Assembly: GCA_907165135.1 (NCBI GenBank)
Contig: OU015567.1
Span: 15,252,001 to 15,316,000, forward strand
Origin: Oikopleura dioica
Lineage: Eukaryota; Animalia; Chordata
Direction of reading: 5' to 3'
Length of the DNA stretch: 64,000 nt
Shown: piece after piece, positions 19,249 through 36,951 of the stretch
How positions within the stretch are numbered: position 1 is the stretch's first letter
How the letters are laid out: each line of letters starts with the position of its first letter
Notes under the pieces: generated by a model
Told to the model about the DNA's origin: nothing
What the model saw: the letters and a program-made list of their open reading frames with translations, nothing else
Databases searched by the model: none
Program-made: the position numbers and the translations under genes

Positions 19249-20852
19249 ATGCCTCTTTCTCGACTGGACGGAGTGGAGAAAAGAGTCGGCTTCAAATGTA
19301 CCGTCGACGAATGCGGGAAAGTCTTCCAGGAAAGGGAAGACATTCTCAAGCACATCAAAGAAAACCACAAAACTGGACGTTTCAAGAAAGTACTGCTTGG
19401 CTCAACTGCTAAGCCGCCGACTGCTGGAGCCATTACTGGTACTTTATTTCTTTCCGGGCTCGGCAACCTGCGTAGAAAACCTGACTCAGGGTCCGAGAAA
19501 AATTTTGACCCTGACTCAGGTTTTCTACATAGGTTGACGAGTCCACATTTCAATTTTACTGTTTTCCATGCTATTTTAGCCAAGAAAACAGCCGGACTAG
19601 CATCGATCACTCTCCACAGAAAGAAAGAAACGAAGGAAAAGGAAGAAAAGCAGAAAGTCTACCGTTGCACCGTTTGTCGACTGATTAAGCCAACTCGGAA
19701 TGAAATCGAAGCTCATTGCTTGGCAAAACACAATCAGAAATCTAAGTGGATTCTTGTCAATCGAAAGAAGCAGATGGCGAGAAAAGCAGTCGACTCACTT
19801 AGTAAGTTGCCAAAAATTGAGAATCCTGATCTCTAGAACGATTTCTCCGATTTTATGTTTAATTTTAAGAATCATTGAAGGACGAGTACGACAATGTTGA
19901 AACTTATCATTGTCCATATTGCGAGTTCGAGACAGAAAAGCTCACGGGACTGGTGAAACATTTGCCACAACACACACCCGATGATTTGTATGAAGTGAGC
20001 CTCAGATTGCAGAAGAATATGAAGTTGAAAACCTTCAGGTTTCATTTCTCCGCTTTTTTCTTTCGTTTATCAACTCTTTTAAGATGCATTGTCTGCTTCT
20101 ACAGGTCGCTGAAAGGGTCGACTTTGCGCGAACACTTGGAATCTCATTCGGAAGAAGATATCCTCGATCGTGCCTTGGACTTTTCCAACGATCAAGCAGA
20201 TGACTCCTCAAGCGAAGAGGAAGAAGACGAAGAAACAGAGCCCGAGATTGAGGAAGAAAATATCATCGACTTCAAGCAACCGCTGCAATTCAAGCCAGGC
20301 GATGCTCACTAGTAAGATTCTCCGAAAAAAAAGATCAGAAACTCTTATTTTAGTCAGGCAATTCAAGATAACGATATTGTCTTGCCAAAGAAGTTCACCT
20401 GCACCCTTTGCAGCTACCTATGCTCCTCGAAGAAAGAAGTCTCCATGCATGTGAAGGACTTTCATAGAATTGAAATGAACGAACACCTGATCTTGTCGAG
20501 CTTCATTGACGAGAAGCTGGAGTCGTTGACGACGGATACACCGGATAAGAAGGCGAGAGAAACTATCACATTGCCAGCTGCTAAGAAATTGACCACGAAG
20601 CCTCACCAAGGCCGCAAGGAGTCGACCATTTGTCTCGGGCTCAATATTTTTGATAATTGCTGACGTTGATAAATCCCCATAGGTATCCATTTTCTGAGCC
20701 CTAGAATCAGTAAATACTGCGGCAGAGAAATTCCAGCGTGGGATCATGTTTTTCTCCAACGCCATTTGGAGCTACATGAGAAAGCTGCTACAGGAGGAAG
20801 TGTTGCCCTCCCCTATCCCGCTGAATGGATTGTCGACTCCACCTCCAAATAG
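19249..20852 (+). CDS. Dispersed C2H2 zinc-finger protein (5-6 fingers)
   Basis: CTVDECGKVF...HIKENH; CTVC...HCLAKH; CPYC...HLPQH; CIVC...HLESH; CTLC...HVKDFH; probable KYC...HLELH in the last exon (junction not resolved). Confidence 0.8.
19456..19544. mobile_element. MITE family A minimal copy (almost pure hairpin) in zinc-finger gene intron 19439-19579
   Basis: GGGCTCGGCAACCTGCGTAGAAAACCTGACTCAGGGTC + 13-nt spacer + GACCCTGACTCAGGTTTTCTACATAGGTTGACGAGTCC. Confidence 0.9.
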
Positions 20853-34505: not shown

Positions 34506-36951
34506 TCAGAATTTCCAGTCCCAGGGAATGATCAGAAATCCATCGAAGTGTTTTCGATAGTTTTTGGAAATAAGAAGTCGGTTGCCAACTGTGAATAGGA
34601 TTTGATTTTGAAATTGAAAATTTCAACAGTCCATTTGGATTCCGCAATCTGTGTAAAAACCTGACTCACGACCTAAACAAGCTTCGCTAGAATGAATAAA
34701 TAGACTGTAATCGTAGGTTTCCCGAAGCCGCCTCGCGGCTTCGTTCTCAAAAAAGCCGCTACGCGGCTTTTCATTCAAGCTCGTTTCGGCCCTAACTCGG
34801 GTTTTTTCACAGGTTGCCGAGTCCAGCTGTCAGTATCTTTAATTACCCCTAAGATGGATTCACACTAATAAAATTGTAATTTTCGAGAGATTCTCATTTA
34901 GAATCACTAATTAGGTTTCAAAGTAATTTTATCCTCTTTCCTATTAACGGATAGTTATCAAGAATCTTCGACCTCTGCAGTCTCTGGAGACAGTCGACCA
35001 TTTTCGAATCCGGCAGACCTGGCTGCTTCCGAATCTCCTTGATGCCATAAGTTTCGCAAAGCCGCTCTTCGAGAAAATTTCTCCTTCTCTTGAGCTGTCG
35101 ATAAAATTGCCTTCGCTCTCTTGCTTCTTCGGAGAATGTGCTGAGGTGTTCAATTAATTGCTCTGGACGGATATCGTATCTGACGAGGAAGGAGCCTCGT
35201 TCTGTCACGGAGAATGACGTCGTTTTTTCTCTGCTGGAAGTTACACAAAATTAATCAAAATCCCCCGAGGGCGTGAATTACCAAGAGGTTGAATGATTAG
35301 GCTATGTTTCATCACGCTAGTTCCGAAAAGAAAGCTTCTAATCTACTTAAACTTTCGGAGAAAACAATCACCCTCGTTTAAAAGTAAGTTTTGCATAACC
35401 GTCCTTTCTGATGGGAAAATAACGCCCGTCTCCCACTGGGCAATATCAATTTCCAGCTCAAACTGACTCATACTGTGCTCATCAAGCACTTCATTGAGCA
35501 TGTACAAGTGGTGTAGCAAAATGCCAATGCGCTCCTTGTACAGTAGTATCTCGACTGGTCGGGCAATCTGTGAGCCGCCGACAGCACCGATTGCAAGCGG
35601 TCGGAGAATTTTAATCCCTCCGAGGATTCGCCGCAGTTCGTACTCTTTGTAGTCCGTATCTTTGATCAAGTACTGCAGGTCCGTCTGGTTGTATCTTCGT
35701 AGAAATCGCGCCCAGTCTTCGGCCTGGTCAAGAACTGCGAGACAAATGGTATGACGAGCGGCGCGGTCGGCCGCCAGTGTCGTATGATGAAGGTCCGAGA
35801 AGATTACTTTTGTTCCCTCCAAGTGTCCGAGGCTGTCCAAGTGACGCTGCACCGTTCTGTGAAAGCCCCCGATGACGCCAGTTTGTAAATTGAGGCCCAT
35901 TGTCGAGCACCATAGAAACTCTTTCAACTTGAGCTGCTCCTTAATCTCTTCCATTCTTTTTCGCACCAGTTGTGTTCGCCGAAAATGCTTTATTTCGTTA
36001 ATAGCGACATCAGTCAATTCAACACACCTTGGACTGTAACTTCACCGCTTCCTCGAGATACAGTCTGAGCCATTTTTCCAGCGCGGGGTTGAGATCTAAC
36101 GATGGAATGTTCACTTTCTTGCCGAAGGAGAATATGTCGTCATCAAAATTGACAGATGCTTGATTTCGATGATGAGTCCTCGTGGATTCATCCCTCGCGT
36201 TTTTACTCGATATCAAATATTCTAAGTGGGTTGTAGTCAGACCAGTGCCCTGAAGAAAGAGGTCTGTTTTATTTATGCGGTTATTGAGTATCTACTTTCA
36301 TTCAGAATGTCGCACTTAGATATTTATCGATGCTTTTCTATCACGAGTTATTTGATCACGAGTTGCGAGATTCTCAATTTTGAGAATCTTTCGCAAGTAC
36401 CTTCAGACACTTTTCTATTCCATCAAGGACATCGTCAGACTGCAACAAAAGGGACACTGATCGAGGAAGCTGTTTTCCTTCTTTGAGATAAAAAGTAATC
36501 GGCAACTTGAGAAGCTCCTTTATGGCTGGGGTCGACAACCTGTGTACAAAACCTGAGTCAGGGTCCTGAAAGAGCAATAATTAAAGCTGCATATGCGGCT
36601 TTTTCAAATACGAAGCCGCACAGCGGCTTCCCCAAAATTACAAGTCACAGGCCTTACACAGGCTTTCTACACAGGTTGCCGATCCCAGCTTTTTGGTCTT
36701 CATCTCGTTGAGGCTGGAAATCCATCCGTGAAGATTCGAAAGCGACTTCGAATTAACTTCGCGGATGTCCGGATGCTGCCCGAAGAGATCTGGGTGGATC
36801 TGACCGTCATTTGCTCAAAATTATGCATCTAAGTCTAGTTATCAAACAGTTTGCTATTTTTTCAGAGCAAAACCTTGGTTATCAAAGGCTTGAGCGCGCC
36901 GTTGATTTCAGAATTCGTCAGTCGCCCGAGAAGTGAAAACGAGACATACAT
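34506..36951 (-). CDS. TCAIM: T-cell activation inhibitor, mitochondrial (C3orf23 family)
   Basis: ALKPLITK|IHPDLFGQHP...ITFYL matches the DUF4460 HPDxFGQxP motif; the C-terminal DGFLIIPWDWKF* matches the TCAIM end. Start approximate. Confidence 0.85.
34635..34826. mobile_element. MITE family A copy in the last TCAIM intron
   Basis: CAATCTGTGTAAAAACCTGACTCA ... CCTAACTCGGGTTTTTTCACAGGTTGCCGAGTCCAG, with internal GAAGCCGC/GCGGCTTC hairpins. Confidence 0.8.
36526..36688. mobile_element. MITE family A copy coextensive with a TCAIM intron
   Basis: CTGGGGTCGACAACCTGTGTACAAAACCTGAGTCAGG ... CTACACAGGTTGCCGATCCCAG; coding sequence abuts both ends. Confidence 0.85.

Follow-up and report, generated by a model that had tools for sequence, protein, structure and literature searches.

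A MITE within the coding region of TCAIM

The 64,000-nucleotide stretch of Oikopleura dioica DNA analysed here (the window; assembly GCA_907165135.1, contig OU015567.1, positions 15,252,001 to 15,316,000) carries on its minus strand, at 34509-36951, a gene that by its domain content is TCAIM-like (DUF4460 + DUF4461), and the coding sequence of this gene is interrupted at 36526-36688 by a 163-nt miniature inverted-repeat transposable element (MITE). The interruption is almost certainly a derived insertion into a coding exon, because other O. dioica lineages and a more distant Oikopleura-like species carry one uninterrupted exon in its place. Judged from the age of the copy and the state of the gene, the element is probably removed from the mRNA, and the explanation that we favour, at slightly less than even confidence, is that the MITE itself is an intron, spliced out at its own ends. 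All features of the gene described below lie on the minus strand.

Exon A (36799-36689, 37 codons) contains the HPD-containing part of DUF4460 and closes with NEMKTKK. The element starts at 36688 (CTGGGATCGG...) and stops at 36526 (...CCCCAG), and coding picks up again at 36523 as IKELLKLPITFYL. The initial annotation had coding sequence directly abutting the element on both sides; this was accurate for the coordinates and for the 5' junction, while on the other side two bases, CC (36525-36524), stand between the terminal CAG and the resumed ATA codon and belong to the downstream copy of a target-site duplication. The upstream copy of that duplication, CCAAAAAG (36689-36696), lies within the codons T-K-K, and the downstream copy, CCATAAAG (36518-36525), matches it at 7 of 8 positions and shares its codon phase on the far side of the element. 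The element together with one duplication copy amounts to 171 nt, or 57 codons, and taking both out restores one open exon, whereas reading through the element in frame meets two stop codons. The earlier suggestion that the copy had landed in a coding exon is borne out by this 8-bp duplication, with both copies in the same codon phase.

The element has CTGGG...CCCAG ends and is a short, internally deleted member of a palindromic family. In the sense of the gene its 5' terminal inverted repeat (TIR) occupies 36644-36688 and its 3' TIR 36526-36570; the two arms of 38 nt are 84% complementary, and the RNA of the element is predicted to form one long hairpin of -89.9 kcal/mol (z = -9.3 relative to shuffled sequences).

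The uninterrupted exon was found in all the orthologues compared. In L031 (Logan SRR29245574), which represents another O. dioica lineage with about 77% nucleotide identity, exon A and exon B (36401-36523 in the window, 41 codons) form one exon without the element, one duplication copy and one further codon, giving an alignment gap of 174 nt as against the 171 nt above. The Bergen reference (L032, GCA_000209535.1) and the metagenome contigs L033-L035 have an identical 75-residue uninterrupted exon, and exons A and B are also continuous in L036/L037, metagenome contigs from the ENA that derive from a distant Oikopleura-like species (49% identity). The TCAIM protein of Styela (P0016) aligns without a gap to the restored window length. 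Exon B is therefore contiguous with exon A in every orthologue examined, and L031, L032, L033-L035 and L036/L037 all have neither the MITE nor an intron at this position, which agrees with the insertion proposed in the initial annotation. The TCAIM gene of L036/L037 is also nearly intronless, with a single open stretch to which Styela TCAIM aligns across 475 residues. By these comparisons, the insertion arose in the Okinawa (Ryukyu) lineage after its split from the other O. dioica lineages.

The opposite polarity would require that an old intron or element had occupied the site and had been lost precisely in the other lineages. Rapid intron turnover in O. dioica, of which the lineage-variable intron C/D of TCAIM is an instance, is the single point in favour of such an ancestral interruption, and we reject it as having next to no chance of being correct: the interruption is absent from three O. 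dioica-type sources and from the distant outgroup, the 8-bp duplication is the mark of an insertion, the restored length is that of Styela TCAIM, and no copy of the family was seen in roughly 25 kb of other-lineage DNA examined.

The insertion site is a variable linker after the HPD-containing helix of DUF4460. A one-codon indel adjoins it, and its length differs by zero to two residues between species. A low-confidence AlphaFold model, with a local pLDDT of about 60-70, gives the Styela protein a helix at residues 53-75 and a strand at residues 85-92, and the site lies between the two. It is plausible from this model that a few extra residues would be tolerated here.

Age of the copy and constraint on the gene

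The identification of the gene is based on the two Pfam domains of TCAIM, both of which score above their curated cut-offs and stand in the expected order. PF14687 (DUF4460) is found in exon A (40.7 bits, cut-off 25.5, E = 2.7e-10) and PF14688 (DUF4461) in exon D (35404-35987) and exon E (34941-35230) at 34.4 and 39.4 bits, respectively (cut-off 24); the Styela homologue (P0016) is named T-cell activation inhibitor, mitochondrial-like. Seven exons were placed, each searched and aligned separately, and all of them are open, amounting to about 490 codons with no stop or frameshift. Exon 1 (36874-36951, 26 codons) provides the start codon, is 100% identical in amino acids to L031 and begins the public protein P0029. 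Exons A, B, D and E are joined in this set by exon C (analysed as 36031-36249, though the exon really ends at 36028) and exon F (34509-34588). No in-frame ATG is present in exons B and C, whose translation therefore needs an upstream start, in exon 1. A protein initiating downstream of the element was considered as a candidate and ruled out on the same ground.

Substitution counts, summed across exons, indicate that the gene is under constraint. Between the window and L031 the synonymous divergence (dS) is 1.22 and the nonsynonymous divergence (dN) 0.072, giving a dN/dS of about 0.06; the corresponding values are 1.18 and 0.082 between the window and Bergen, and 0.44 and 0.035 between L031 and Bergen. 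Only 7 residue changes could be polarised to the branch leading to the window, and all are conservative. Nonsense changes make up 4.9% of the single-base changes possible in this coding sequence, and under neutral drift at K = 0.05 one would expect 53 non-synonymous changes and 3.6 stops, with a probability of 0.027 that no stop arises.

The TCAIM copy of the element does not look young. Its two TIRs match at 32 of 39 positions, compared with 33-39 of 40 in other copies, and its 3' arm differs from the family consensus by 11.4%, within the span of 7.8% to 23.5% seen in 53 sampled arms, none of which belongs to a young copy. The copy looks old because of these TIR mismatches, the divergence of the arm from the consensus and the 7/8 match of the duplication. 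Barring an insertion far more recent than these figures suggest, we infer that the gene has remained functional while carrying the element. An old copy in a gene that is intact and constrained points to removal of the element from the mRNA, and it is this intactness that suggests that the insertion was tolerated with the element removed.

If the element were instead retained, translation would meet one of its stops and transcripts would be degraded, and the sequenced male would carry a null or hypomorphic TCAIM, possibly in the heterozygous state. The two stops met on read-through fit such a broken or leaky allele, as does the origin of the assembly from one individual, an Okinawan male (OKI2018_I69, PMC8008620). 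We consider it improbable, since the copy looks old and yet about 490 codons contain neither stop nor frameshift and only conservative changes, and since the public gene model of the locus, described below, shows expression and splicing downstream. No second copy or haplotig of exon A was found in the genome assembly to which the window belongs.

Candidate splice sites in the element

In the explanation that we favour, a short copy of an abundant, palindromic, hAT-like MITE family inserted into the single TCAIM coding exon and, as the gene has stayed intact and constrained, the spliceosome would remove the element from the mRNA. By the most likely route, a donor within the 5' TIR, GTAAGG at 36657 or GA at 36684, would be joined to the AG that closes the 3' TIR (36527-36526). 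One duplication copy and 4 to 31 bases of the TIR would stay behind in frame as a scar, and the protein would gain 4 to 13 residues.

These two donors were named in the initial annotation, and both indeed keep the frame when spliced to the terminal AG: the intron would be 159 nt long with GA at 36684, leaving 4 additional residues, and 132 nt long with GTAAGG at 36657, leaving 13. A third in-phase GT, overlooked in that annotation, is GTGTAG at 36672, which would give a 147-nt intron with 8 additional residues. The scars of the GA and GTAAGG routes (4+8 = 12 nt and 31+8 = 39 nt) are multiples of three at any insertion phase. The best-looking acceptor of the element is an internal one, TTTCAG, which ends at 36566 in the 3' TIR; it is in phase 0 and suits only phase-0 donors, such as GTAGAA at 36670 (22 additional residues).

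The 5' TIR departs from the family consensus at positions 6, 26, 31 and 34. Among 103 sampled TIRs, the TCAIM copy itself excluded, about 93% have GTCAG where GTAAGG stands (TIR positions 32-37) and 2 have GTAAG, which upholds the earlier remark that GTAAGG differs from a consensus GTCAGG. At TIR positions 5-6, where the TCAIM copy has GA, GC is found in 67% and GA in 2.7% of 110 TIRs, the TCAIM copy included. The two donor-like departures, GC to GA and GTCAGG to GTAAGG, are restricted to the gene-sense 5' TIR. In addition, GA-AG splicing occurs twice elsewhere in TCAIM according to the public model.

Several observations weigh against an intron bounded by the element. The two donor-like changes were picked post hoc and each has a chance rate of about 2-3%. 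GA donors of O. dioica are reported to have AG upstream and A downstream, as in AG|GAA (PMC7072748), a context with which the 36684 site, CTGG|GATCGG, fits poorly. GTAAGG and the TTTCAG at 36566 differ in frame, and pairing the two gives a TGA stop. All the candidate donors and the terminal acceptor lie within the -90 kcal/mol stem. The age of the copy was judged from its divergence from the consensus and from TIR mismatches, differences that the source copy could already have carried, and the argument from gene integrity no longer carries weight at K below about 0.02. Finally, the public gene model, which was built with hints from RNA sequencing (RNA-seq), uses no site within the element and omits exon A.

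The public gene model and skipping of exon A

CAG5114234.1 (P0029; Oidioi.mRNA.OKI2018_I69.chr2.g8297.t1; 453 residues) is the only public gene model of the locus and maps at 100% to exons of the window. It fuses exon 1 straight to LPITFYLK by joining the donor at 36873 to an AAG acceptor at 36506, so that its first intron (36506-36873, 368 nt, GT...AAG) takes in intron 1/A, exon A and the MITE and ends six codons into exon B. The program AUGUSTUS is not known to accept GA-AG introns other than from hints, and the two GA-AG introns of this model, which need such hints, indicate that TCAIM has read support and is expressed. The OKI2018_I69 gene models were made by AUGUSTUS with RNA-seq intron hints (PMC8008620). 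CAG5114234.1 may thus reflect a real junction between exon 1 and 36505. The initial annotation had held that the copy created a new intron in a coding exon; the insertion into the exon stands, while the use of the element as the intron is not what the public model, itself not a transcript, depicts, as it splices outside the element.

Taken at face value, the model describes skipping of exon A, in which the exon 1 donor (36873) is joined to a cryptic AAG acceptor (36506) situated 20 nt past the element, the MITE is removed within a larger compound intron, and the protein loses 43 residues including the HPD motif. This outcome is possible but on balance doubtful. The structure is exactly that of P0029, with its 100% map and its RNA-seq-hinted prediction by AUGUSTUS, and the predictor had a canonical GT-AG route through the element available and did not pick it; an AAG acceptor is also found in intron C/D of the same gene, and the hairpin would conceal the sites of the element itself. 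Against this, what is mapped is a gene model rather than a transcript, and these exons are often missing from O. dioica models, as in the Bergen model CBY20642.1, which lacks exons 1, A and B though they are uninterrupted there. Skipping would also lose the best-conserved stretch of DUF4460, while the window retains exon A and the preceding 21 bases of the intron intact and conserved, and it would leave the donor-like changes of the TIR unexplained. The case resembles transposon-induced exon skipping or cryptic-site use in what the public gene model depicts, and differs from it in that the most conserved domain motif would go, yet exon A stays conserved in the genome.

The Bergen model deserves a separate remark. 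CBY20642.1 (L032, FN653015.1, 3001-3783) is a truncated TCAIM model: its first residue lies within exon C, and the GC donor following FPSER is read through. The Bergen DNA does contain exons 1, A+B, E and F, which are unannotated.

Further searches of public sequences for the gene were negative. A profile search with Styela TCAIM and the window exons as separate rows returned no full-length O. dioica TCAIM protein, a protein word search with the uninterrupted open reading frame (ORF) of the L031 exon gave no match, a search with P0001 returned other lineages only, and two exact-anchor scans of JGI metagenome contigs found no match. Two other proteins, P0030 and P0031, are encoded on ENA contigs that appear to be of the window lineage.

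The MITE family

The element belongs to a family with at least 451 first-look candidate sites in the genome, for which a genome-wide search reported 78 matches. That the element is a chance inverted repeat was ruled out by this membership in a family of hundreds of copies. A typical member is palindromic and about 244 nt long, each arm measuring about 113 nt; in the TCAIM copy one arm is complete and 45 nt of the other are left. Target-site duplications with 8 of 8 matches flank the copies in L005, L006, L008, L013, L021 and L030, and those of L007, L024 and the TCAIM copy match at 7 of 8 positions. The 8-bp duplication together with the TIRs suggests that the family is a hAT-like MITE family. 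It shares with MITEs of the hAT superfamily the length of the duplication, the terminal inverted repeats, the want of coding capacity and the presence of hundreds of copies, and differs from them in its long, palindromic arms and in its termini: the usual hAT terminal motif is YARNG, which the family consensus end CTGGGCTCGG (CTGGG) does not fit.

The other copies in the window had been placed inside longer introns or outside coding sequence in the initial annotation. This holds for most of them, for example for a second copy in TCAIM itself (about 34637-34826) within the last intron, E/F, but long ORFs, of 71 and 93 codons, adjoin a 93-nt copy at 19454-19546 on its two sides. That copy has a 6/8 duplication, and the right-hand ORF includes a zinc-finger-like C-x2-C...H-x3-H stretch.

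Besides the TCAIM copy, 3 of 26 copies with usable flanks restore an ORF of at least 65 codons on each side, compared with 3.5% of random sites at a threshold of at least 60 codons; of the three, only the copy in L024 looks convincing, as a second probable case of an exon split by the family. This copy (L024:1414-1611, C2 about 856355-856552) has a 7/8 duplication, and its excision restores an ORF of 96 + 104 = 200 codons. Its gene-sense TIR begins CTGA|GTTCGG, with a canonical GT at positions 5-6 where the TCAIM copy has GA, and splicing at this GT would leave the same 4+8 scar. The protein encoded by its flanks gave no match in Pfam, the PDB or the Atlas.

Other introns of TCAIM

Two further introns of the gene, D/E (35231-35403, donor AAAG|GAC at 35403) and E/F (34589-34940, donor ATAG|GAA at 34940), are of the GA-AG type and are used in CAG5114234.1. 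Their positions are conserved, and their counterparts in L031 and Bergen are GC-AG introns. Intron E/F is 352 nt long in the window and about 70-80 nt in L031 and L032. Intron C/D (35988-36027, 40 nt, GT...AAG) is a second lineage-specific intron of TCAIM, confined to the lineage of the window; L031, Bergen L032 and the outgroup L037 run through its position unbroken as LQSK-HFRRT. AAG stands both at the end of its upstream exon and at its own end, and it has no obvious transposon features.

In intron 1/A, the last 21 bases (36800-36820; about 256-276 in L031) are the same in the window as in L031, with one base different in Bergen. This conservation stands despite saturated synonymous sites (dS 1.2) and marks a constrained intronic element.

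Relation to introners and other transposon-derived introns

Introners were reportedly described by Huff in 2016 as families of DNA transposons that create spliceosomal introns, and a review credits Denoeud in 2010 with intron gains by transposon insertion in Oikopleura. That transposons give rise to introns is already established; what is new here is a well-polarised candidate case in O. dioica TCAIM.

Introner families, which are families of DNA transposons creating spliceosomal introns, have been found in algae and in many other eukaryotes, Micromonas and Aureococcus among them (Gozashti 2022, PMC9860276 / 10.1101/2022.06.06.494994). The TCAIM copy shares with them that it is a multi-copy element with TIRs and a target-site duplication in a coding exon where the orthologues have no intron, and that its ends carry candidate splice signals. 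One Aureococcus introner family adds 4 bp and an 8-bp duplication, that is, 4 residues (PMC9860276), and the GA route predicted for the TCAIM copy would likewise use 4 bp of the element and the 8-bp duplication to add 4 residues. The differences are that splicing of the TCAIM element is only predicted and the public model disagrees with it, that most of the family copies examined here are not in exons and the host is an animal, and that the TCAIM copy, old and diverged, does not come from a recent burst.

Tunicates provide closer comparisons. MITE-derived non-canonical introns are described in the larvacean Fritillaria borealis (Henriet et al. 2019, as reviewed in PMC11282704). They share with the TCAIM element a larvacean host, introns with TIRs and target-site duplications at lineage-specific positions and a spliceosome that tolerates non-GT donors, and they differ in having AG-AC and AG-AT ends and in dominating the genome of their host. 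O. dioica uses G*-AG ends, and non-canonical introns make up about 11% of its introns (PMC8008620). Introner families have also been listed for a metagenome-assembled genome (MAG) of Oikopleura sp. from Tara (Gozashti 2022 Dataset S01) and for Styela clava (PMC12130899). Both hosts are tunicates, and the MAG families average 202-215 nt with mostly GT donors, near the size of the family described here; these are other genomes, and the likeness to our family is one of host, size and donor type. Bergen O. dioica is among the genomes surveyed in Gozashti 2022 Dataset S01, and no introner family was seen under its name.

A bolder proposal is that the CTGGG...CCCAG family as a whole is a working chordate introner. 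Any insertion into an exon would bring a G-N at positions 5-6 and a terminal AG in either orientation and could be spliced with a frame-neutral 12-nt scar, after which selection would sharpen the donor (GC to GA or GT, GTCAGG to GTAAGG), and the TCAIM copy would be an old, fixed example. We regard this as speculative and less likely than not.

The introns of O. dioica are known to turn over wholesale, and many of them are of the G*-AG type; the source of the new ones is mostly inferred. The TCAIM locus offers a cleanly polarised instance, in which two sister lineages and an outgroup have the exon whole and the insertion is marked by a target-site duplication, and the copy is old enough for the integrity of the gene to inform on how the cell copes with the insertion. 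The locus also exposes a likely defect, or else a real oddity, in the public TCAIM gene model. At stake is whether an animal spliceosome makes a clean intron with a small peptide scar from a MITE or whether the gene is rescued by skipping a conserved exon. If the family were a working introner, part of the G*-AG introns of O. dioica and of its rapid intron turnover would descend from it, as in Fritillaria.

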